From assembly GCF_031769215.1 (NCBI RefSeq), contig NW_026781945.1:744001-808000 (forward strand): a stretch of DNA of 64,000 nucleotides, read 5' to 3'. Made by a program: the position numbers and the translations under genes. Below the pieces are notes generated by a model. That model worked only from the letters and a program-made list of their open reading frames with translations, searched no databases and had not been told where the DNA came from. Positions 3,001 to 16,757 of this stretch are shown here, piece by piece. Position 1 is the stretch's first letter, and each line of letters begins with the position of its first letter. The stretch comes from Ylistrum balloti. Lineage: Eukaryota.

Positions 3001-3927
3001 ATATCGATATAGATATATGTAATGTTTACTACTAGTCTTCAAAACAAGAACATATACCTTAAATGCTGCATATCATGTCTAGCAAATTCTCATCAATGAT
3101 CAAGATTAATTCTCTAATACCCTTTCTCTGCATCCGGCTATGTTTTAGAACACACGGTTTTCAACAAAAACAAGATGAATTATAAATGTCTTGCGTTCCT
3201 TCTCTGTTTGATAGTGTTAGATTAAAAACAAGGAATATCCTTTCTGAGTATTTTAGGATACAATGATTGTATAAAACACACCAACGTTAATAGCACCTGA
3301 CGATACCAATTATAGACACAGCATGTTGACCGAATTTAATTGTATCAGACAGTTGTATAGTCCTTCTAGAACTCCTCATTCTTAAACTCATGGGCACGAC
3401 TGAGAAAAATCCAAATTGGTCAAATAAAATACCAAAATCGATCTGCTGAGGTGCACTCTTACCTTAAAACTACAATTGGACGAATTTGATTATTTTCAAT
3501 ATTGAACATTTTAAAAAGATTATCGATTCTGAACAGCCCTATACTAGTCAAATAAGTGACATGTTGGGTTAACAAACAAGAACACAGGTAAATCGTATAT
3601 AAGTTATTTTACATACTAGTGTTGTGTCCATGTCCCAACCTAAACTTATAACATGCTCTAGCGACACGGCAGTAATCATGTAACGTTTGTCGTTTACCTT
3701 TAGATCTGCCAGGGATCACACCTTGGACCTCTGACTTCAGAGAGGTTCTTTCTAACCGAATCGCTAGAAAGCAGCAAGTATACATCACTTAACATCTTAC
3801 ACAAATAATGTTTCTTGTATCATGTATGGTTCTACTGTTCAGTAACAATCATCAAATGCGGGAATTATTTCTGTCCATTTCTGGTCTAATTCGAAACGAA
3901 TGCCTGAAGGTACAAATCATTTGTATA

Positions 3928-5210
3928 TCCTAGAGGGAAGACATACCTGTATGATGTAGGTCCTTAGTATCACTAACGAGTCCTAGAGAGAAGACACACT
4001 TGTATGGTGTAGGAGCTTAGTATCACTAACGAGTCCTAGAGAGAAGACACACTTGTATGGTGTAGGACCTTAGTATCACTAACGAGTCCTAGAGAGAAGA
4101 CACACTTGTATGGTGTAGGACCTTAGTATCACTAACGAGTCCTAGAGAGAAGACACACTTGTATGGTGTAGGACCTTAGTATCACTAACGAGTCCTAGAG
4201 AGAAGACACACTTGTATGGTGTAGGACCTTAGTATCACTAACGAGTCCTAGAGAGAAGACACACCTGTATGATGTAGGTCCTAAGTATCACTAACGAGCC
4301 CTAGAGAGAAGACACACTTGTATGGTGTAGGACCTTAGTATCACTAACGAGTCCTAGAGAGAAGACACACCTGTATGATGTAGGTCCTAAGTATCACTAA
4401 CGAGCCCTAGAGAGAAGACACACCTGTATGGTGTAACATCACTAACTAGCCCTAGAGAGAAGACACGACTGTATCGTGTAGCATCTCTAACGAGTCCTAG
4501 AGAGAAGACACACCTGTATGGTGTAGGTACTTAGCATCACTAACGAGCCCTAGAGAGAAGACACACCTGTATGATATAGGTCCTTAGCATCACAAACGAG
4601 TCCTACAGAGAAGACACACCGGTATGTGTAGATCATTAGCATCACTAACGAGCCCTAGAGAGAAGACACACCTGTTTGATATAGGTACTTAACATCACTA
4701 ACGAGCCCTAGAGAGAAGACACACCTGTATGGTGTAGGTCCTAATCATCACTAACGAGCCCTAGAGAGAAGACACACCTGTATGGTGCAGGTCCTTAGTA
4801 TCACTAACGAGTCCTAGAGAGAAGACACGACTGTATGGTGTAGCATCTCTAACGAGTCCTAGAGAGAAGACACGACCGTATGGTGTAGTATCACTAACAA
4901 GTCCTAGAGGGAAGGCACACCTGTATAATGTAGCATCACTAACGATTCCTAGAGGGAAGGCACAGCTTTATAATGTAGCATCACTAACGAGTCCTAGAGA
5001 GAAGACACACCTGTATGGTGCAGTTCCTTAGTATCACTAACGAGTCCTAGTGAGAAGACACACCTGTATGGTGTAGCATTTCTAACGAGTCCTAGAGAGA
5101 AGACACGACCGTATGGTGTAGTACACTAACGAGTCCTAGAGAGAAGACACGACCGTATGGTGTAGTACACTAACGAGTCCTAGAGAGAAGGCACGGCTGT
5201 ATGATGCAGT
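3928..5210 (+). repeat. Minisatellite of ~26 units (44/45/53 bp) derived from a minimal hammerhead ribozyme, catalytic core inactivated (array A)
   Basis: The 45-bp unit CATCA-CTAACGA-GTCC-TAGAGAGAAGACACGACTG-TA-TGGTG-TAG aligns without gaps to the hammerhead monomer at 42175-42216. CUGANGA is CUAACGA and GAAA is GACA. The 53-bp units carry an extra ~8 nt (GACCTTAG). Confidence 0.85.
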
Positions 5211-5553: not shown

Positions 5554-7505
5554 TCATTCCTCCATACATTCACCGGAAATGACGATATAGTCCCTTTCTA
5601 CACGCCTGTGTTGTCGTGTGCCTTTCTGAAGGCTCCAAGCGTAACTATATTTGTTTAACGTGTCCACTTCACTCATCGCTTTCTTGTCTAAAACTGCTCT
5701 CCTCACAAATACTTTGCAGCCTTGCTCTACAACACTTTGTATTTGTCTGTGAAGTCGGAGTTTGGCTCCAAATAGAAGGTTGTATTCCCATTCACGGTTA
5801 TCAATGGTACCAGAAATTACTTTGGAAAACATAACGTGCCGTTTTCCTCGCCTTTTCGTTTGTACTGCTATCTCATAAAGAGCAGATTTGCATTTGTCTC
5901 TGAAAAGTTGGATACGTTTGTGGCACGTTCCTTTGAATTTTCTTCTGAAGCCATTTTTGGTTTTAGGTTCATTGACGTCTGTTGGGATATATGCGAGTCG
6001 CCACGACGACCAATCAAGACAGTTGCACGTGAATACTGTTTCCGCTGTTTTCTCTCTTGGAATCATTTTAGCATCATCATTGCAGATGAGTTTGTCCTGG
6101 AATAATAAATTACATGTCATTAATATTTTTATATAACGGTCTACTTGACCTTCGGTTTTCACGAAAACTAATTTTATTTTTAGTAAAATGGAATTCATCT
6201 AACAGAAAAATGACCAATGATAGAAATATGATATGTACCTTGATATTCTTGACTGTCACGTTTCTACGCTTTGGATTGACCTTTGACCTAGACGGGTCGA
6301 CTTTTGTCCTTCTTGGAACGCCCTTCAAAGGTTGTGGCGCTGGAGAAGTCGTGGTTGGGGTTGACAATGGTGAAATAATTGGCGGGGCTGGGTGTATGCC
6401 ACTTGTACCCGAACCAGTCTTTCTCAGAGTTCCAAATAATCCCTCCAGGTCTCTGTTGATACCACATGGTCCATATCGTCCTCGGACCTCGGCTTCATAG
6501 CCCTGAAGTAAACAGATAACAACATTATTATTGAATGCATTCGTGTAACACATAAAAGTCAGTGTAAATTAAACTTCAGAATTTTATTTCAAGAAGAAAA
6601 AAGGAAAAATAAATCGTTTTAAACTCAATGTATTTAGTACTTACAGAGAAGAGGTCATCGCCCCTTTCCCGATAACAGATGGCCATGAGGAAGTCACAGA
6701 TGTTGGAGAATTCATTGAGCTTGAGGTAATGTCCTTCAGTGTTTGCTGATATTGTCTTGTAGAAGTCGTCAATGCCTTCATTTTCAAACACTTGTACGCC
6801 ATATATCTTAACACCCTGAAATAATCCAAATTTAACGATGTTTATTATACAATCAATACATAATTAATCGATTGTTGTATTTCAATGTAAGTACTAATTA
6901 TTGTAAAATACGTCAAGTTGTCAACTTATATCAAATAATCATTTGACAACAAACTTACCATATTGTATTTCAATGTAAGTACTAATTATTGTAAAATACG
7001 TCAAGTTGTCAACTTATATCAAATAATCATTTGACAACAAACTTACCATATTGTGAAGATCAGCGACTTCAGCTCTCCAGTCAATGTTGTCCACATTCAG
7101 CTCATACTCGGGTTCGTGTGGTTTGGCGTCTCCAATCATGACCAGAATTTTTTGTGATGCTGGAGTCCATGAGAAGTTTTGTCGGACCATGCGGAGAATA
7201 AGCTCGTAACATTCATCTTCGTCGCCGCCACCAGTACCCTCTACACCTTTCACAAAGTTACAAAGTTCTACGACATCGCTACAAAGGTCCAGTTGCTTTG
7301 TAAGATAGAAGACCTTTTCATCACAGTAGTCCCCGTGGGCTATGACACCGATTCTAATGCCTGGAATGTCCGCCTGGAGGCGCTGTATCATGTCCTGTAA
7401 CCGTCCCTGGACCTCCTCAAGTATAGAGGACATCGATCCAGTAGTGTCAAAGGAGAAGACGATTTCGAGGAGTCCTCCTGGAGGAAGCATGGATGGTGCT
7501 GCCAT
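5554..7505 (-). CDS. vWA (MIDAS) + ET/HRT-like GIY-YIG-fold protein, copy 1 (478 aa, 4 coding exons)
   Basis: Exons 7505-7047, 6815-6645, 6502-6239, 6096-5554; all GT-AG, all phase 0, frame open throughout. vWA motifs FDTTGSM, GGGDEDE, IGDA. C-terminal WSSW..ALYEIAV..KYSYAW. Confidence 0.9.
6875..7050. repeat. 88-bp direct tandem duplication in intron 1 of copy 1, duplicating the 5' splice site
   Basis: 6875-6962 = 6963-7050. The intron is 231 nt here versus 143 nt in copies 2 and 3. TTGT microhomology at the junction. Confidence 0.95.
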
Positions 7506-7948
7506 AGTTGTCAGAATCTGAAATAAGTTTAAATTGTCATTAATTTATTGATTGATTTACATCTTTGTCTTATATTTTGTATAACGTCGCTGTTAGAATT
7601 AAGATACTTTAGAGTAATATTATCTCCTTACAATAGCTCGTTTTTATTGATAACTGACGTTTATACAGTGACTAATTAACAAAAATGCTTAGATTTTAAA
7701 TTGTTCATCTAGTTATTAATGTATCAAATTGTGGTTTTAATTATCATTTTTTAAAACCTTTCATACGATTTGTTAATATTTAAAATTACCTTTGACATAT
7801 ATCAGTAGGTAAATATAATGTAGATACTATTAGTTTATCGGTGGAGCGATTTTTCGCTGCCTGCTCTGAATAGCTGTATACTAGTAAGTATAGTGTGTTC
7901 ACCTTGCCGATCCAATACACACTGCTGTCTGCCGTCTGCTCACAGCCC

Positions 7949-7956
7949 TATTTATA
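7949..7956 (-). promoter_or_regulatory. TATA box (TATAAATA) upstream of vWA copy 1
   Basis: TATAAATA followed ~30 nt later by a CAGT initiator-like motif; conserved in all three copies; AG acceptor 12 nt before the ATG implies a 5' UTR intron. Confidence 0.55.
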
Positions 7957-8792
7957 CTGTTTCCCCGGGACAGGCTGAGACTTGTTCGCTAAAAATACGC
8001 CACTACATGTTTGATCGATGAACACGATACAATGAAAATATAAAAGGTGTATCGAATTAAACAAACTGCGTCACTGTCTTCTCGGACTTTATCATAGAAG
8101 CCCTTTATTTTGAATATTGCTATGTTCGCACATTCGAAAGGGACACTGAATGCAAATAGTAATATATGATATACAACTCTATACACGAAACGATTACGTT
8201 CATATCTTGTAACTAGTGAACAAAATTGTAATAGAAACAATATTTGGCATATTCTTGTACCAGTCCATTGTAAAATGTGCAACCTGACTTGGAATAAAAT
8301 TGTCGTGATGTGTCAAACATTTCCAAGTGATATCCTAACAGAGCTAATGGTGCGGTTTAATTTATCTAAGTATATTCTATATACATGTAGTTCCAACGCT
8401 TTACTCTTGATATAAAACCTATTGATGTTTTGGTTCCTGTTGTCCATTTCCCTGAAATTGGCTGAGCAATTTACAAACACGTATTATTTGTTCGTTTATT
8501 GTTCTTTCCATATATTGAATCATATCTTGACAGCATATTACATTTTTAAAATATCTTCTCAATAATACTTTCATTTACAAGTTTTTATCATTTCATTTGA
8601 AATTGTTTCTTGACATCATACATTACATACAGAAAATTTGTCAAAGTAAGTAAAAATCTCTATTTAAAATCAGTGCTTGACTATAGTGAACAAAAGTTTA
8701 TTTTACCTTACACTTAGTATTTCTATGTGGAATTCTACATTAAAAAGAGCAAATAACTGTTTTTATACTTCCTGTAATATTGTCATTTTAAT

Positions 8793-9551
8793 AACATGAC
8801 TGATATCTCCTGTATTATTGGTATACCAGAAACATGGCTGATATCTCCTGTATTATTGATATACCAGAAACATGGCTGATGTCTCTTGTATTATTGATAT
8901 ACCAGAAACATGGCTGATGTCTCTTGTATTATTGGTATACCAGAAACATGGCTGATATCTCCTGTATTATTGATATACCAGAAACATGGCTGATGTCTCT
9001 TGTATTATTGATATACCAGAAACATGGCTGATGTCTCTTGTATTATTGATATACCAGAAACATGACTGATATCTCCTGTATTATTGGTATACCAGAAACA
9101 TGGCTGATATCTCCTGTATTGTTGGTATACTAGATACCTAGATGATATCTCCTGTATTATTGATATACCAGAAACATGGCTGATGTCTCTTGTATTATTG
9201 ATATACCAGAAACATGGCTGATATCTCCTGTATTATTGATATACCAGAAACATGGCTGATATCTCCTGTATTATTGGTATACCAGAAACATGCCTGATAT
9301 CTCCTGTATTATTGGTATACCAGAAGCATAGCTGATATCTCCTGTATTATTGATATACCAGAAACATGGCTGATATCTCCTCTCCTGTATTATTGATATA
9401 CCAGAAACATGGCTGACGTCTCATGTATTATTGATATACCAGAAACATTAGTGATATCTCCTGTATTATTGTTATACCAGAAACATGGCTGATATCTCCT
9501 GTATTATTGGTATACCAGAAACATGGCTGATATCTCCTGTATTACTGGTAT
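8793..9551. repeat. 38-bp minisatellite, ~20 units
   Basis: Unit GATATCTCCTGTATTATTGATATACCAGAAACATGGCT. Confidence 0.97.
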
Positions 9552-10320
9552 GACAGTACATTGTCACTCGTTCCGTTATTCAAAGTTTACAACACACGCT
9601 ATCGATCGTTGAATGAGTTCTGATGAACAGTAACATCGTTGTCAATCATTGAAAATATACGCTTTAGTTGACTAAATCATCATTTTTATCAATAAACAAT
9701 ATCATTATGTTATTGCGAATGTATATAACGTATTATGTCAACAGCATAAACCTTAAAGTTATGAAATCAATAATGATATAATTATTTTATCCGTTGCGGA
9801 TGTAGATCAATGTCGATAACCAAATCACAATATCATCTGTATGTTTGTGACGGATACGTTTTCTTTGTCTTAACTAATGCTTCTTTCTGATATAGAGAAA
9901 TAATCCAATCTGTTTGTTATTACATTTTCTACAGTGTGAAATATGGTTTGTTTATTTTCTATTAGTCACGGTATCGTTGGTGTCAGCTTATACAACTAAC
10001 TCATATTTCTGGAAATAAGTGATTTCTTATTGAAAACAAAGACGGTGTTATCAGAATATGTCATAACTTAACAATTATTTGACATTATAGACAAAACAAA
10101 ACATTGGAACATATTCATTTTTATTTAAAACTATACAAATTAAACAATATGAAAATGGACCATGAAATGTACATCAAATGGCAAGTGTTATAACAAAATG
10201 TCAAATAAAATATCGTTCTACAGTAAAATAAAAATCATAAAGCGGACTACATGGAATTTACTTTATAATTAACGGAAACATCCAAGTAAAACGACATTGT
10301 TCATGTCAGTCATCAAATAT

Positions 10321-12174
10321 TCATTCCTCCATACATTCACCGGAAATGACGATATAGTTCCTTTCTACACGCCTGTGTTGTCGTGTGTCTTTCTGGATGC
10401 TCCAAGCATAACTATATTTGTTTAACGTGTCAACTTCACTCATTGCTTTCTTGTCTAAAACTGCTCTCCTCACAAATACTTTGCAGCCTTGCTCTACAAC
10501 ACTTTGTATTTGTCTGCGAAGTCGGAGTTTGGCTCCAAATAGAAGGTTGTATTCCCATTCACGGTTATCAATGGTACCAGAAATTACTTTGGAAAACATA
10601 ACGTGCCGTTTTCCTCGCCTTTTCGTTTGTACTGCTATCTCATAAAGAGCAGATTTGCTTTTGTCTCTGAAAAGTTGAATACGTTTGTGGCACGTTCCTT
10701 TGAATTTTCTTCTGAAGCCATTTTTGGTTTTAGGTTCATTGACGTCTGTTGGGATATATGCGAGTCGCCACGATGACCAATCAAGACAGTTGCACGTGAA
10801 TACGGTTTCCGCTGTTTTCTCTCTTGGAATCATTTTAGCATCATCATTGCAGATGAGTTTGTCCTGGAATAATAAATTACATGTCATTAATATTTTTATA
10901 TAACAGCCTACTTGACATTCCGTTTTCACGAAAACTAATTTTATTTTTAGTAAAATGGAATTCATTTAACAGAAAAATGACCAATGATAGAAATATGATA
11001 TGTACCTTGATATTCTTGACTGTCACGTTTCTACGCTTTGGATTGACCTTTGACCTAGACGGGTCGACTTTTGTCCTTCTTGGAACGCCCTTCAAAGGTT
11101 GTGGCGCTGGAGAAGTCGTGGTTGGGGTTGACAATGGTGAAATAATTGGCGGCGCTGGGTGTATGCCACTTGTACCTGAATCAGTCTTTCTCAGAGTTCC
11201 GAATAATCCCTCCAGATCTCTGTGAATACCACCCGGTCCATATCGTCCGCGGACCTCGGCTTCATAGCCCTGAAGTAGACAGATAACAATATTATTGAAT
11301 GTTTTCATATAACACATGAAGGTCAGTGTAAATCAAACTACAAAATTTTAAGATAAAAGAATAAATCAAATCGTTTTAAACTTGATGAATTTAGTACTTA
11401 CAGAGAAGAGGTCATCGCCCCTTTCCCGATAACAGATGGCCATGAGGAAGTCACAGATGTTGGAGAATTCGTTGAGCTTGAGGTAATGTCCTTCAGTATT
11501 TGTTGATATTGTCTTGTAGAAGTCGTCAATGCCTTCATTTTCAAACACTTGTACGCCATATATCTTAACACCCTGAAATAATCCAAATTTAACGATGTTT
11601 ATTATACAATCAATACATAATTAATTAATTGTTGTATTTCAATGTAAGTACTAATTATTGTAAAATACGTCAAGTTGTCAACTTATATCAAATAATCATT
11701 TGACAACAAACTTACCATATTGTGAAGATCAGCGACTTCAGCTCTCCAGTCAATGTTGTCCACATTCAGCTCATACTCGGGTTCGTGTGGTTTGGCGTCT
11801 CCAATCATGACCAGAATTTTTTGTGATGCTGGAGTCCATGAGAAGTTTTGTCGGACCATGCGGAGAATAAGCTCGTAACATTCATCTTCGTCGCCGCCAC
11901 CAGTACCCTCTACACCTTTCACAAAGTTACAAAGTTCTACGACGTCGCTACAAAGGTCCAGTTGCTTTGTAAGATAGAAGACCTTTTCATCACAGTAGTC
12001 CCCGTGGGCTATGACACCGATTCTAATGCCTGGAATGTCCGCCTGAAGGCGTTGTATCATGTCCTGTAACCGTCCCTGGACCTCCTCAAGTATAGAGGAC
12101 ATCGATCCAGTAGTGTCAAAGGAGAATACGATTTCGAGAAGTCCTCCTGGAGGAAGCCTGGATGGTGTTGCCAT
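10321..12174 (-). CDS. vWA (MIDAS) + ET/HRT-like GIY-YIG-fold protein, copy 2 (478 aa)
   Basis: Exons 12174-11716, 11572-11402, 11269-11006, 10863-10321; GT-AG, phase 0, intact frame; near-identical to copies 1 and 3. Confidence 0.9.
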
Positions 12175-12626
12175 AGTTGTCAGAATCTGAAATAAGTTTA
12201 AATTGTCATTAATTTATTGATTGATTTACATCTTTGTCTTATATTTTGTATAATGTCGATAATTGAATTAAGATATTTTAGAATAATATTATCTCCTTAT
12301 CTCCTTACAATAGCTCGTTTTTATTGATAACTAACATTTATACAGTGACTAATTAACAAAAATGCTTAGATTTTAAATTGTTCATCTAGTTATTAATGTA
12401 TCAAATTGTGGTTTTAATTATCCTTTTTAAAAACCTTTCATACGATTTGTTAATATTTAAAATTACCTTTGACATATATCAGTAGGTAAATATAAATGTA
12501 GATACTATTAGTTTATCGGTGGAGCGAGTTTTCGCTGCCTGCTCTGAATAGTTGTTTACTTGTAAGTATAGTGTGTTCACCTTGCCGATCCAATACACAC
12601 TGCTGTCTGTCGTCTGCTCACAGCCC

Positions 12627-12634
12627 TATTTATA
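12627..12634 (-). promoter_or_regulatory. TATA box upstream of vWA copy 2
   Basis: Same TATAAATA context as at 7949-7956. Confidence 0.55.
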
Positions 12635-14447
12635 CTGTTTCCCGGGACAGGCTGAGACTTGTTCGCTAAAAATACGCCACTACATGTTTGATCGATAAAC
12701 ACGATGCAAAGAAAATATGAAAGGTGTATCGAATGAAACGAACTGCGTCATTGTCTTCTCGGACTTTATCATAGAAGCCCTTACATTCGAAAGGGACACT
12801 GAATGCAAATACTGATATCATAGTATATATCTTATTGTTATTATTTATTGTTTTCCACTAAATGAATTTATTTTCCTAGAAATCAAATTAGTTGTCGTGA
12901 AAACTGAATTTTAATTAAATTGTAAAGGTACGACATATTCTGATAAGGCCGTCTCTGTTTTCAATAAAATATCACTTGTTTCCAGAAATATGAGTTAGTT
13001 GTATAAGCTGACACCAACGATACTGACTAATAGAAAATAAACAAACCATATTTCACACTGTAGAAAATGTAATAACAAACAGATTGGATTATTTCTCTAT
13101 ATCAGAAAGAAGCATTAGTTAAGACAAAGAAAACGTATCCGTCACAAACATACAGATGATATTGTGATTTGGAAATCGACGTTGATCTATATCCGTAACG
13201 GATAAAATAATTATATCATTATTGATTTCATAACTCTAAGGTTTATGCTGTTAACATAAGACATTATATATATCTGTAATAATAATTATGATATTGTTTA
13301 TTGATAAAAATGATGATTGAGTCAACTAACGTATATTGTTAATGATGGACAGCGATGTAACAGTTCATCATAACTTCTTAGAAGATAGTTAGCATGTGTT
13401 GTAAACTTTGAAAGGTGTAGCGATGTTTCAGTCATACAAAATATACAGGAGATATGAACAACGCTTCTGGTATATCAATAATACAGGGGATGTCAGCCAT
13501 GTTTGTGGTATATCAATATTACAGGAGATATCACCAATGTTTCTCGTTAAACAATAATACTGGAGATAACAATATCTATAAAATGACAATATTACAGGAA
13601 GCATCAAAGCAGTAATTTGCTCTTTTTAATGTAGAATTCCACATGGAAATACTTTGTGTAAGGTTAAGATATTTTTTTCTTCACTAGAATCAAGCAATAA
13701 TTTAAAATAGAGATTTTTACTGACTTTGACAAATTTTCTGTATGTAATGTATGATGTCAAGAAATAATTTCAACTGAAAAGAAAAATACTTGTAAATGAA
13801 AGTATTATTGAGAAAATATTTTTAAAATGTAATATGCTGTGAAGATATGATTCAATATATGGAAAGTAGAATAAACGAACAAATAATACGTGTTTGTAAA
13901 TTGCTCAGCCAATTTCAGGAAAATGGACAACAGGAACCAGGACATGAATAGGTTTTATATCAAGAGTAAAGCGTTGGAATTACATATATATAATATACTT
14001 TGATAAATTTAGACCGCACCATTCGTTTGGTTCAGAAATCACTTGGAAAAGTTTGATACATCAGTAATAAAATACCTGTACTAATTATTTCCGTTGATCT
14101 TAAATCAGGTTACACATTTTACAAAGCACTTGTACCGGTATATGTCAGATATTGTTTCTATTAACATGTACACAATCAATATTGTTCACTGATTACAAGA
14201 TATGAACGTAATGGTTTCGTGTATAGAGTTGGATGTTATATAAAATATTTGCATTCAGTGTTCCTTTCGAATGTGCAAACATAGCAATATTCAAAATAAA
14301 GGGCTTCTATGATGAAGTCCGAGAAGACCGTGACACAGTTTGTTTAATTCGATACACCTTTTATATTTTCATTGCATCGTGTTCATCGATCAAACATGTA
14401 GCGGCGTATTTTTAGCGAACAAGTCTCGGCTTGTCCCGGGGAAACAG

Positions 14448-14455
14448 TATAAATA
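14448..14455 (+). promoter_or_regulatory. TATA box upstream of vWA copy 3
   Basis: TATAAATA, GCAGTG near 14481, UTR-intron acceptor at 14885-14886, ATG at 14899. Confidence 0.55.
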
Positions 14456-14898
14456 CGGCTGTGAGCAGACGACAGACAGCAGTGTGTATTGGATCGGGAA
14501 AGTGAACACACTATACTTACTAGTATACAGCTATTCAGAGCAGGCAGCGTAAACTCGCTCCATCTATAAATTAATAGTATCTACATATATATTTACCTAC
14601 TGATATATGTCAAAGGTAATTTTAATTATTAACAAATCGTATGAAAGGTTTTAAAAAATGATAATTAAAACCACCATTTGATACATTTATAACTAGATGT
14701 ACACTTTAAAATGTAAGCATTTTTGTTAATTAGTCACTGTATAAATGTTAGTTATCAATAAAAACGAGCTATTGTAAGGAGATAATATTACTCTAAAAAT
14801 CTTAATTCTATTATCGACATTATACAAAATATAAGACAAAGATGTAAATCAATCAATAAATTAATGACAATTTAAACTTATTTCAGATTCTGACAACT

Positions 14899-16757
14899 AT
14901 GGCAACACCATCCATGCTTCCTCCAGGAGGACTCCTCGAAATCGTATTCTCCTTTGACACTACTGGATCGATGTCCTCTATACTTGAGGAGGTCCAGGGA
15001 CGGTTACAGGACATGATACAGCGCCTTCAGGCGGACATTCCAGGCATAAGAATTGGTGTCATAGCCCACGGGGACTACTGTGATGAAAAGGTCTTCTATC
15101 TTACAAAGCAACTGGACCTTTGTAGCGACGTCGTAGAACTTTGTAACTTTGTAAAAGGTGTAGAGGGTACTGGTGGCGGCGACGAAGATGAATGTTACGA
15201 GCTTATTCTCCGCATGGTCCGACAAAACTTCTCATGGACTCCAGCATCACAAAAAATTCTGGTCATGATTGGAGACGCCAAACCACACGAACCCGAGTAT
15301 GAGTTGAATGTGGACAACATTGACTGGAGAGCTGAAGTCGCTGATCTTCACAATATGGTAAGTTTGTTGTCAAATGATTATTTGATATAAGTTGACAACT
15401 TGACGTATTTTACAATAATTAGTACTTACATTGAAATACGACCATTAATTAATTATATATTGATTGTATAATAACCACCGCCAAATTTGGATTATTTCAG
15501 GGTGTTAAGATATATGGCGTACAAGTGTTTGAAAATGAAGGTATTGACGACTTCTACAAGACAATATCAGCAAACACTGAAGGACATTACCTCAAGCTCA
15601 ATGAATTCTCCAACATCTGTGACTTCCTCATGGCCATCTGTTATCGGGAAAGGGGCGACGATCTCTTCTCTGTAAGTACTAAATACATTGAGTTTAAAAC
15701 GATTTATTTTTCCTTTCCTTGAAATAAAATTCTTAAGTTTAATTTACACTGACATTTATGTGTTAAATGAAAACATTTAATAATAATATTGTTATCTGTT
15801 TACTTCAGGGCTATGAAGCCGAAGTCCGCGGACGATATGGACCAGGTGGTATCCACAGAGATCTGGAGGGATTATTCGGAACTCTGAGAAAGGCTGATTC
15901 AGGTACAAGTGGCATTCACTCAGCGCCGCCAGTTATTTCACCATTGTCAACCCCATCAGCGATTTCTTCTGTGCCAAAACCAGTGAAGGGCGTTCCAAGA
16001 AGGACAAAAGTCGACCCGTCTAGGTCAAAGGTCAATCCAAAGCGTAGAAACGTGACAGTCAAGAATATCAAGGTACATATCATATTTCTATCATTGGTCA
16101 TTTTTCTGTTAGATGAATTCCATTTTACTAAAAATAAAATTAGTTTTCGTGAAAACCGAAGGTCAAGTAGACCGTTATATAAAAATATTAATGACATGTA
16201 ATTTATTATTCCAGGACAAACTCATCTGCAATGATGATGCTAAAATGATTCCAAGAGAGAAAACAGCGGAAACCGTATTCACGTGCAACTGTCTTGATTG
16301 GTCATCGTGGCGACTCGCATATATTCCAACAGACGTCAATGAACCTAAAACGAAAAATGGCTTCAGAAGAAAATTCAAAGGAACGTGCCATAAACGTATC
16401 CAACTTTTCAGAGACAAATGCAAATCAGCTCTTTATGAGATAGCAGTACAAACGAAAAGGCGAGGAAAACGGCACGTTATGTTTTCCAAAGTAATTTCTG
16501 GTACCATTGATAACCGTGAATGGGAATACAACCTTCTATTTGGAGCCAAACTCCGACTTCACAGACAAATACAAAGTGTTGTAGAGCAAGGCTGCAAAGT
16601 ATTTGTGAGGAGAGCAGTTTTAGACAAGAAAGCAATGAGTGAAGTGGACACGTTAAACAAATATAGTTACGCTTGGAGCCTTCAGAAAGGCACACGACAA
16701 CACAGGCGTGTAGAAAGGGACTATATCGTCATTTCCGGTGAATGTATGGAGGAATGA
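14899..16757 (+). CDS. vWA (MIDAS) + ET/HRT-like GIY-YIG-fold protein, copy 3 (478 aa), inverted relative to copies 1 and 2
   Basis: Exons 14899-15357, 15501-15671, 15809-16072, 16215-16757 (459+171+264+543 nt); GT-AG, phase 0. Confidence 0.9.

Follow-up and report, generated by a model that had tools for sequence, protein, structure and literature searches.

Three nearly identical genes in the scallop Ylistrum balloti join a vWA (von Willebrand factor A) domain to what looks like a GIY-YIG nuclease fold, and the question is what kind of protein they encode and whether it cuts or binds nucleic acid. The genes lie at positions 5554 to 16757 of a 64,000-nucleotide stretch of contig NW_026781945.1 (positions 744,001 to 808,000; hereafter the window), where an earlier note had described them from the letters alone. 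We found the three genes to be recent, species-specific paralogues of an old lophotrochozoan family whose members combine the vWA domain with a GIY-YIG domain resembling that of plant EFFECTOR OF TRANSCRIPTION (ET) proteins. Considering all the evidence together, we lean slightly towards a reading in which these paralogues encode a two-module, probably nuclear, nucleic-acid-binding protein.

Three intact and recently duplicated genes

The rebuilt gene models and the RefSeq identity of one copy confirmed the three intact genes of 478 amino acids (aa), here called copies A, B and C. The four-exon model was built from the sequence of copy C and carried to A and B by alignment. In all three, the exon borders are GT/AG, the three introns are in phase 0, and the coding sequence of 1437 nt translates to 478 aa with zero internal stops. 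Over all of its 478 aa, the protein of copy C agrees fully (100%) with the RefSeq entry "uncharacterized protein LOC132565729" of Ylistrum balloti (P0139), and assembly GCA_031769215.1 carries its gene on contig JAUZWB010000497.1. Compared with the same entry, copy A reaches 97.1% identity and copy B 96.4%. Based on open reading frame (ORF) listing, repeat finding and tblastn, A and B are arranged in tandem and C faces B head to head, and tblastn found no fourth copy in the 64-kb window.

Pairwise, the copies differ by 11–17 aa, with 32–43 differences in the coding sequence, 21–27 synonymous and 11–17 nonsynonymous, a synonymous divergence (dS) of 0.07–0.09 and a ratio of nonsynonymous to synonymous divergence (dN/dS) of 0.14–0.18. 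The amino acid changes concentrate in exon 3, which encodes the linker and shows the highest dN, while exon 4 of copies A and C differs by seven synonymous and zero nonsynonymous changes. The low dN/dS and the intact reading frames indicate that all three copies have been kept under purifying selection since their origin.

The sequence motifs cited in the earlier note were all found at the expected places in the copies. Exons 1–3 contain DTTGS (aa 20–24), GTGGGD (90–95), GDA (125–127) and PRRTK..PKRR (273–291), and exon 4 contains WSSW (327–330), ALYEIAVQ (370–377), VMFSK (386–390), VFVRR (427–431), AMSEVD (438–443) and YSYAW (448–452). No signal peptide was seen in the scallop protein on inspection by eye.

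A vWA module with a complete metal site

Exon 1 alone scored above the Pfam cutoffs for VWA_4 (PF25106; 29.0 bits, cutoff 27) and VWA (PF00092; 25.7 bits, cutoff 23.8), and the vWA scores of homologues reached 49 bits. We modeled the full-length protein with AlphaFold2 (AF2), using an input alignment of 78 homologues, and obtained a mean predicted local distance difference test score (pLDDT) of 82.9 and a predicted template modeling score (pTM) of 0.58, the latter fitting two independently placed domains. In the model, aa 13–204 form the alternating strands and helices of a Rossmann-like vWA fold, mostly with pLDDT >90, two more helices follow up to aa 242, and the C-terminal domain folds on its own. 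Foldseek placed the vWA part of the model nearest to integrin beta-I domains (E ~1e-9, probability 1.00), and a PDB sequence search with the vWA domain gave no meaningful match.

The residues D20, T22, S24, T91 and D126 of the metal ion-dependent adhesion site (MIDAS) are, like many other vWA positions, invariant in the 78 homologues; the middle Ser of the DxSxS motif is Thr in the scallop copies (D20-T21-T22-G23-S24). With profile scores above cutoff, integrin beta-I fold matches and invariant MIDAS residues, the earlier claim of an intact metal-binding vWA domain stood: the MIDAS is complete, and the module, acidic with an isoelectric point (pI) of 4.5, is predicted to bind a metal ion.

The residues from aa 242 to 306 are disordered in the model (pLDDT <50) and form a Pro/Ser/Thr-rich, basic linker with a pI of 10.7. 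The linker and its basic patch at aa 273–291 had been described before and were recovered here, and the patch, with its resemblance to bipartite signals, may act as a nuclear localization signal (NLS).

At the other end of the protein, all three copies carry an acidic C-terminal tail, GECMEE, at the same position (16731-16754 in copy C). Family proteins stop 4–6 residues past an almost invariant "IS", with acidic tails such as xEM[D/E]x and SDK[V/L/F], and 120 of 171 family proteins have Asp or Glu within four residues. The tail might serve as an intrinsic MIDAS ligand or as a C-terminal docking motif.

A C-terminal domain with an ET-type GIY-YIG fold

Exon 4 matched the Pfam family PF19239, "GIY_YIG_domain", with 18.1 bits and an E-value of 0.0023, under the gathering cutoff of 21.4, and the match was restricted to profile positions 110–160, the last third of the profile. 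Among 70 trimmed homologous domains, 34 matched PF19239 at E<0.01 (best E 6.5e-8), and hmmscan found no match to other nuclease families, including PF01541. Homologues scoring above the gathering cutoff were P0050 (23.0 bits), P0004 (22.2), P0014 (23.0) and P0053 (23.5), and three homologues bear a precomputed PF19239 label in public records. In the profile comparison that had been proposed for exon 4, the scallop protein itself stayed below the cutoff and its homologues supplied the assignment.

The AF2 model of the exon 4 domain had a pLDDT of 89.5 and a pTM of 0.86, and we compared it with 48,161 chains in an exhaustive structure search with VIA-align. The top match was T4 endonuclease II (EndoII), with Z 7.3 and a root mean square deviation of 3.2 Å over 111 residues at 14% identity, and ranks 2–6 were taken by Hpy188I (Z 4.5), the UvrC N-terminal domain (4.0), PD-T4-3 (3.9), I-TevI (3.7) and R.Eco29kI (3.2). 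The individual Z scores are modest, but the top six places are all held by GIY-YIG enzymes, which is not to be put down to chance.

In the ESM Atlas, rank 1 was the scallop protein's own mollusc cluster and rank 2 a Streptophyta cluster of 532 aa and 100% PF19239, aligned with a template modeling (TM) score of 0.63 by query over 153 residues. This alignment spans query residues 4–172, that is, the whole domain, and the lower ranks held small prokaryotic GIY-YIG and PF19239 clusters. We take the Streptophyta cluster to be the plant ET family. When the domain model was compared with the PDB in Foldseek, nothing reached E<=0.001, the best TM score being that of EndoII (0.40/0.51); of the modeling and Foldseek comparison suggested earlier, the PDB part was thus not significant, and the ESM Atlas part returned the Streptophyta PF19239 cluster. 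Nothing meaningful came from PDB sequence searches with exon 4 and the domain profile, where a match to ribosomal L20 reflected low complexity, and aligning the profile of the family with the T4 EndoII sequence alone in hhalign was uninformative (probability 0.4). The ET/HRT-like GIY-YIG domain recognized in the earlier note is borne out by the PF19239 matches of the homologues, the top six VIA places and the Streptophyta cluster, and we hold the assignment of the two domains, vWA and ET-type GIY-YIG, with high confidence.

Lack of conservation at four catalytic positions

To compare the catalytic residues, we took T4 EndoII as given in the phage record, with the landmarks VIY37, VY47IG, R57, E118 and W129-N130, of which E118 is marked by the E118A mutation named in a PDB title. 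Conservation was counted over 230 family domains (229 for the Asn column), and the counterparts are listed in Table 1. To place E118 and N130, we matched the motif PPWN to YAWS and used the point at which the structural alignment ends. R399 lies 11 residues past F388, as R57 of EndoII lies 10 past Y47, and E441 is present in copies A, B and C.

Outside the canonical set, the family has its own constant residues: E373 beside the first Tyr, R430 on strand 3 and W330 are invariant, and R312, E313, W327, W401, Y448, Y450, W452, R462 and S472 nearly so. The domain is also strongly basic, with a median pI of 10.3 and a pI >9 in 99% of family members. The lack of conservation at the second Tyr, Arg, Glu and Asn, together with the basic charge, favors nucleic-acid binding over canonical cleavage. 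That the domain may bind rather than cut had been suggested from its degenerate second motif; the idea is plausible and now has wider grounds, as four canonical positions rather than one are unconserved.

A subset of the family, including the brachiopod Lingula and the nemertean Lineus, keeps the pattern "E..R......Y(D/N/E)YAWN", with both Glu and Asn, and has an insert of ~10 residues after strand 3. On a simple reading, the domain would have started out as a canonical enzyme, and constraint on these residues would have been lifted in the radiation of the molluscs, the scallop triplet included.

An old family without a description

When the oyster homologue P0003 served as query in a word-indexed search, 1,350 proteins matched at E<=1e-5. 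Among the 120 matches listed, nearly all were 450–530 aa long with the same vWA + GIY-YIG architecture; they came from bivalves, gastropods, a chiton, Lingula and Lineus, and were labeled "uncharacterized" or "VWFA domain-containing", bar a few from Mizuhopecten. An exhaustive HMMER search with exon 4 against 1.84 billion representative proteins gave 115 relatives at E<=1e-3, of which even the best showed just 40% identity, and the vWA module was also present in 22 of these. A word-indexed search with the Lineus C-terminal domain returned two Lineus proteins only, a result uninformative on other phyla or plants. Orthologues 79–84% identical to the scallop protein were found in four other scallop genera.

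We inferred a quick maximum-likelihood tree of 81 sequences, with support given solely by the Shimodaira–Hasegawa-like approximate likelihood ratio test (SH-aLRT). The tree contained at least two ancient clades, each with both bivalves and gastropods and each broadly tracking the species tree, and local bursts, such as 13 Haliotis sequences in one clade. The Y. balloti triplet grouped in a clade confined to this species (SH-aLRT 99), with single lineages of Pecten, Argopecten and Mizuhopecten as its sister.

No literature on a vWA + GIY-YIG fusion was found, including by accession or locus name, and the papers that do combine GIY-YIG, vWA and mollusc concern other proteins. The earlier description as an uncharacterized animal fusion agrees with this and with the labels of the relatives: the architecture is undescribed, and both kinds of domain and the proteins themselves are already in public databases.

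Two observations concern the edges of the family. Some Mizuhopecten yessoensis members (P0137, P0140) are named "Ariadne-like RING finger protein R811" and have no RING domain, a label that we take to be an annotation transfer from a Mimivirus protein via the common vWA domain. GIY-YIG-type domains are also found without vWA, in intronless ORFs of 402–504 aa (P0012, L004:5001-6515; P0058, L003:2847-4055); P0058 keeps Glu and Asn, and P0012 has three N-terminal repeats of ~60 aa.

Viral and phage relatives of the vWA module

The conserved vWA peptides FDTTGSM and AHGDYC[DT] led to 152 relatives in IMG/VR, with identities up to 43–47% over ~240 residues and contigs of 100–530 kb, some of them labeled as giant-virus metagenome-assembled genomes. 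The viral loci with the module are L005:4001-5086 and 79 others (L006-L084); in GenBank (KX853510, MN988519, OQ221536-47), the hosts of the module are crAss-like Bacteroides phages, Rhizobium phage RHph_I1_18 and "Virus Rctr197k". Overall, the vWA domain with its two helices is 33–47% identical over ~240 aa to proteins of giant viruses, large uncultured viruses and phages; a PHROGs search gave only a weak vWA match, and NCBIfam gave none.

Three viral proteins were inspected, and all were ~360–390 aa long and had the vWA module complete with the pair of helices behind it. For two of the three, the C-terminal part matched phrog_26613, which is not related to the GIY-YIG domain. At the viral loci examined, no relative of the C-terminal domain was found beside the vWA genes and there was no Rosetta-stone link. 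The same module occurring with different C-terminal domains points to a widely traveled unit.

Features and surroundings of the locus

The coordinates of the gene features and the counterparts of the EndoII residues are collected in Table 1. Intron 1 of copy A (6816-7046) is 231 nt long and that of B and C 143 nt, a difference of an 88-nt insertion or deletion, and the part alignable to B is 100% identical. A 3' splice site (ttatttcag; 14879-14898 in copy C) lies 12 nt upstream of each ATG, which suggests an upstream untranslated exon for all three copies. Outside the gene bodies, inverted repeats pair 9710-9968 with 13024-13282 and 8373-8705 with 13665-13997, indicating that the triplication involved rearranged flanks and not three clean units. 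A 38-bp minisatellite of ~27 units (8651-9677) lies between copies A and B, and a 53-bp minisatellite (3901-4925) just downstream of copy A.

Table 1. Features of the three gene copies (positions in the window) and counterparts of the catalytic residues of T4 EndoII
Feature	Position	Strand	Details
Copy A, whole gene	5554..7505	-	exons 7505-7047, 6815-6645, 6502-6239, 6096-5554; 478 aa, intact
Copy B, whole gene	10321..12174	-	exons 12174-11716, 11572-11402, 11269-11006, 10863-10321; 478 aa, intact
Copy B/copy C head-to-head spacer	12175..14898	.	upstream-region inverted repeats 12249-12646 vs 14436-14833, 89%
Copy C, whole gene, ATG to stop	14899..16757	+	exons 14899-15357, 15501-15671, 15809-16072, 16215-16757; 478 aa
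Copy C exons 1-2, vWA domain, aa 1-204	14899..15671	+	Pfam, AF2, Foldseek, alignment
Copy C MIDAS residues	14956-14970; within 15166-15183; within 15268-15282	+	D20/T22/S24; T91; D126
Copy C exon 3, two conserved helices extending vWA (aa 206-242), then linker	15809..16072	+	AF2, pI, dN
Copy C PRRTK...PKRRN patch, bipartite-NLS-like	15995-16051	+	aa 273-291
Copy C exon 4, ET-type (PF19239-like) GIY-YIG-fold domain, aa 299-478	16215..16757	+	profiles, AF2, structure searches
Copy C GIY Tyr	16428-16451	+	Y372 beside invariant E373
Copy C residue replacing YIG Tyr	16476-16490	+	F388
Copy C invariant Arg	16599-16613	+	R430
Copy C YSYAW and residue replacing Asn	16662-16679	+	S453
Counterpart of EndoII Y37			Y372 (in ALYE); Tyr 195/230 (85%), Phe 22/230
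Counterpart of EndoII Y47			F388 (VMFSK, no Gly); Tyr 55%, Phe 28%
Counterpart of EndoII R57			about R399; column unconserved, Ser in Mizuhopecten yessoensis orthologue
Counterpart of EndoII E118			about E441; acidic in 30%, Lys in 3/4 closest scallop orthologues
Counterpart of EndoII N130			S453; Asn in 30/229 (13%)

Binding, cutting or defence

According to the reading we favor, each gene would give rise to an intracellular, probably nuclear, protein of two modules. In the first (aa 1–242), the vWA domain would most likely use its metal ion to dock onto a partner protein at one of the partner's acidic residues. A disordered basic linker of ~65 aa with the bipartite-NLS-like patch would connect it to the second module (aa 307–475, one exon), predicted to bind nucleic acid, probably DNA, instead of cutting it in the canonical manner. 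The second module retains the first Tyr, together with the Glu/Arg pair that is invariant in this family, and has presumably lost catalysis, and the protein as a whole may tether the partner held by its vWA domain to nucleic acid. For this mechanism, nuclear tethering through a de-catalyzed ET-type GIY-YIG domain, we regard the case as evenly balanced.

Several observations weigh against the reading. The Y. balloti copies keep Y372, R399 and E441 at canonical positions and may retain a residual or non-canonical nuclease activity. The residue mapping was based on motifs and alignment end points (model 157 = chain 132), not on superposition, and the scallop protein falls below the PF19239 gathering cutoff (18.1 vs 21.4 bits). 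In plants, ET2, a member of the ET family, nicks DNA, and its GIY-YIG domain has been reported to cut single strands (PMC6585611). Finally, the sole public run containing this DNA covers the introns and has zero splice joints, indicating that it consists of genomic DNA and not RNA. Elsewhere in the family, the oyster homologue P0003 has all its 492 aa in a single unbroken ORF, on a contig of 2,046 nt that was assembled from run SRR18452378; a spliced mRNA would look like this, and the family members are probably expressed.

The points on the catalytic residues and on ET2 bear directly on the possibility that the C-terminal domain functions as a nickase or nuclease, using Y372, R399 and E441 or else E373 and R430, and that the MIDAS ligand aims or switches it. 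The closest solved structure, T4 EndoII, has the GIY-YIG fold, the Tyr, Arg and Glu of the Y. balloti copies map to its Y37, R57 and E118, and the brachiopod, the nemertean and a further subset keep "E..R......YDYAWN" with Glu and Asn. Among the closest scallop orthologues, however, R399 is Ser in one and E441 is Lys in three of four; the Asn is Ser and the second Tyr is Phe in the scallop copies; and of all family members, only 30% have an acidic residue at the Glu position and 13% an Asn at the Asn position. To our knowledge, every characterized GIY-YIG nuclease needs the Glu. We consider an active enzyme unlikely.

A role in innate immunity or genome defence, with the vWA domain sensing a pathogen or mobile-element product, the GIY-YIG domain as effector and the triplication providing dosage or diversity, would suit the size of the family (1,350 proteins at E<=1e-5) and its lineage-specific tandem bursts, such as the 13 Haliotis sequences and the Y. 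balloti triplet, and the 33–47% identity of the vWA to giant-virus and phage proteins hints at host–virus interplay. The history of the family weakens the idea: the ancient clades, at least two, track the bivalve and gastropod species tree and do not show rapid birth and death. The dN/dS is 0.14–0.18, and neither of the folded domains shows signs of diversifying selection. Stable orthogroups with low dN/dS are unlike a fast-evolving immune family. PADLOC gave no match, and a mussel paper mentioning a GIY-YIG transcript does not identify the vWA + GIY-YIG family. The dosage-selected, possibly defence-related function proposed in the earlier note is left unsupported, and we judge a defence role to be quite improbable. 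Even less credit goes to a combination of the two ideas, in which the vWA would be a cross-kingdom recognition unit coupled to a conditionally active ET-type nickase, making the protein a MIDAS-switched nuclear surveillance or immune nuclease; there, the acidic tail would perhaps be the auto-inhibitory MIDAS ligand.

The copies could also be non-functional, as recent pseudogene-like duplicates or insertions derived from a virus or transposon. The locus lies among minisatellites and retroelement remains, the sole run found to contain this DNA does not behave as RNA, and the vWA domain has viral relatives. Yet the ORFs are intact in all three copies, with canonical splice sites and a large synonymous excess; orthologues exist in four scallop genera, the family tracks the species tree to the bivalve–gastropod split, and the viral loci have no relative of the C-terminal domain. 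We give this explanation next to no weight and retain nucleic-acid binding by a conserved two-module protein as the favored reading.

Significance

The ET-type GIY-YIG domain, in the literature a hallmark of plant-specific regulators, is here the constant C-terminal module of >1,000 animal proteins, in a family that spans molluscs, a brachiopod and a nemertean and whose members are all unnamed. When a nuclease fold becomes a binding module can be studied in a natural comparison between the mollusc radiation that lost the Glu and Asn and the members that keep both (Lingula, Lineus and a subset). Because giant viruses and crAss-like phages have the vWA module too, learning what it does in any one of these systems would shed light on the rest. 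The significance for the biology of scallops is modest: one orthogroup has recently been triplicated, and its copies are under purifying selection.

Comparison with known systems

The scallop vWA matches the beta-I fold of integrins, but these are extracellular and heterodimeric. A secreted, shell-matrix role of the vWA protein was rejected: there is no signal peptide (by eye), the domain is of the intracellular beta-I/VWA_4 type, and the linker and C-terminal domain are both basic. Among GIY-YIG proteins, SLX1, ANKLE1/LEM-3 and the endonuclease of Penelope-like elements have in common with the family a GIY-YIG superfamily fold in an animal genome; they belong to PF01541-type families and have kept the catalytic residues. 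An origin from a Penelope element was likewise rejected, given the introns, the orthologues and no reverse transcriptase.

The viral vWA proteins of crAss-like phages, RHph_I1_18 and giant-virus metagenome-assembled genomes share the motifs FDTTGSM and AHGDYCD as well as both trailing helices, but have a phrog_26613 C terminus instead of GIY-YIG; Mimivirus R811 is linked to this vWA group by annotation transfer. The match to T4 EndoII (DenA, PDB 2WSH) takes in both the N-terminal extension and the GIY-YIG core, with W-N aligned to W-S. EndoII is a tetrameric DNA nicking and cleaving enzyme with the full Y/Y/R/E/N set, whereas the scallop domain is without the second Tyr and the Asn and is fused to vWA.

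The closest parallel in domain type is with the plant ET/HRT proteins (PF19239). ET genes are regarded as plant-specific (PMC6585611), whereas the scallop family is animal, and the canonical Glu and Asn are unconserved in the mollusc clade. The plant proteins contain Cys/His ET repeats; the scallop protein has none, ends 6 aa past the GIY-YIG domain and instead combines an N-terminal vWA with a C-terminal GIY-YIG domain. Without ET repeats, it is not an ET protein and has only the domain type in common. That common type is a GIY-YIG subtype with an N-terminal beta extension of ~60 aa and a conserved Trp, and with the signature residues LYE on strand 1, Arg on strand 3 and D-Y-A-W. In ET proteins the GIY-YIG domain is on a single exon (PMC6585611), as it is in the scallop genes, and in both the domain is joined to a second, non-catalytic module and accompanied by nuclear features.

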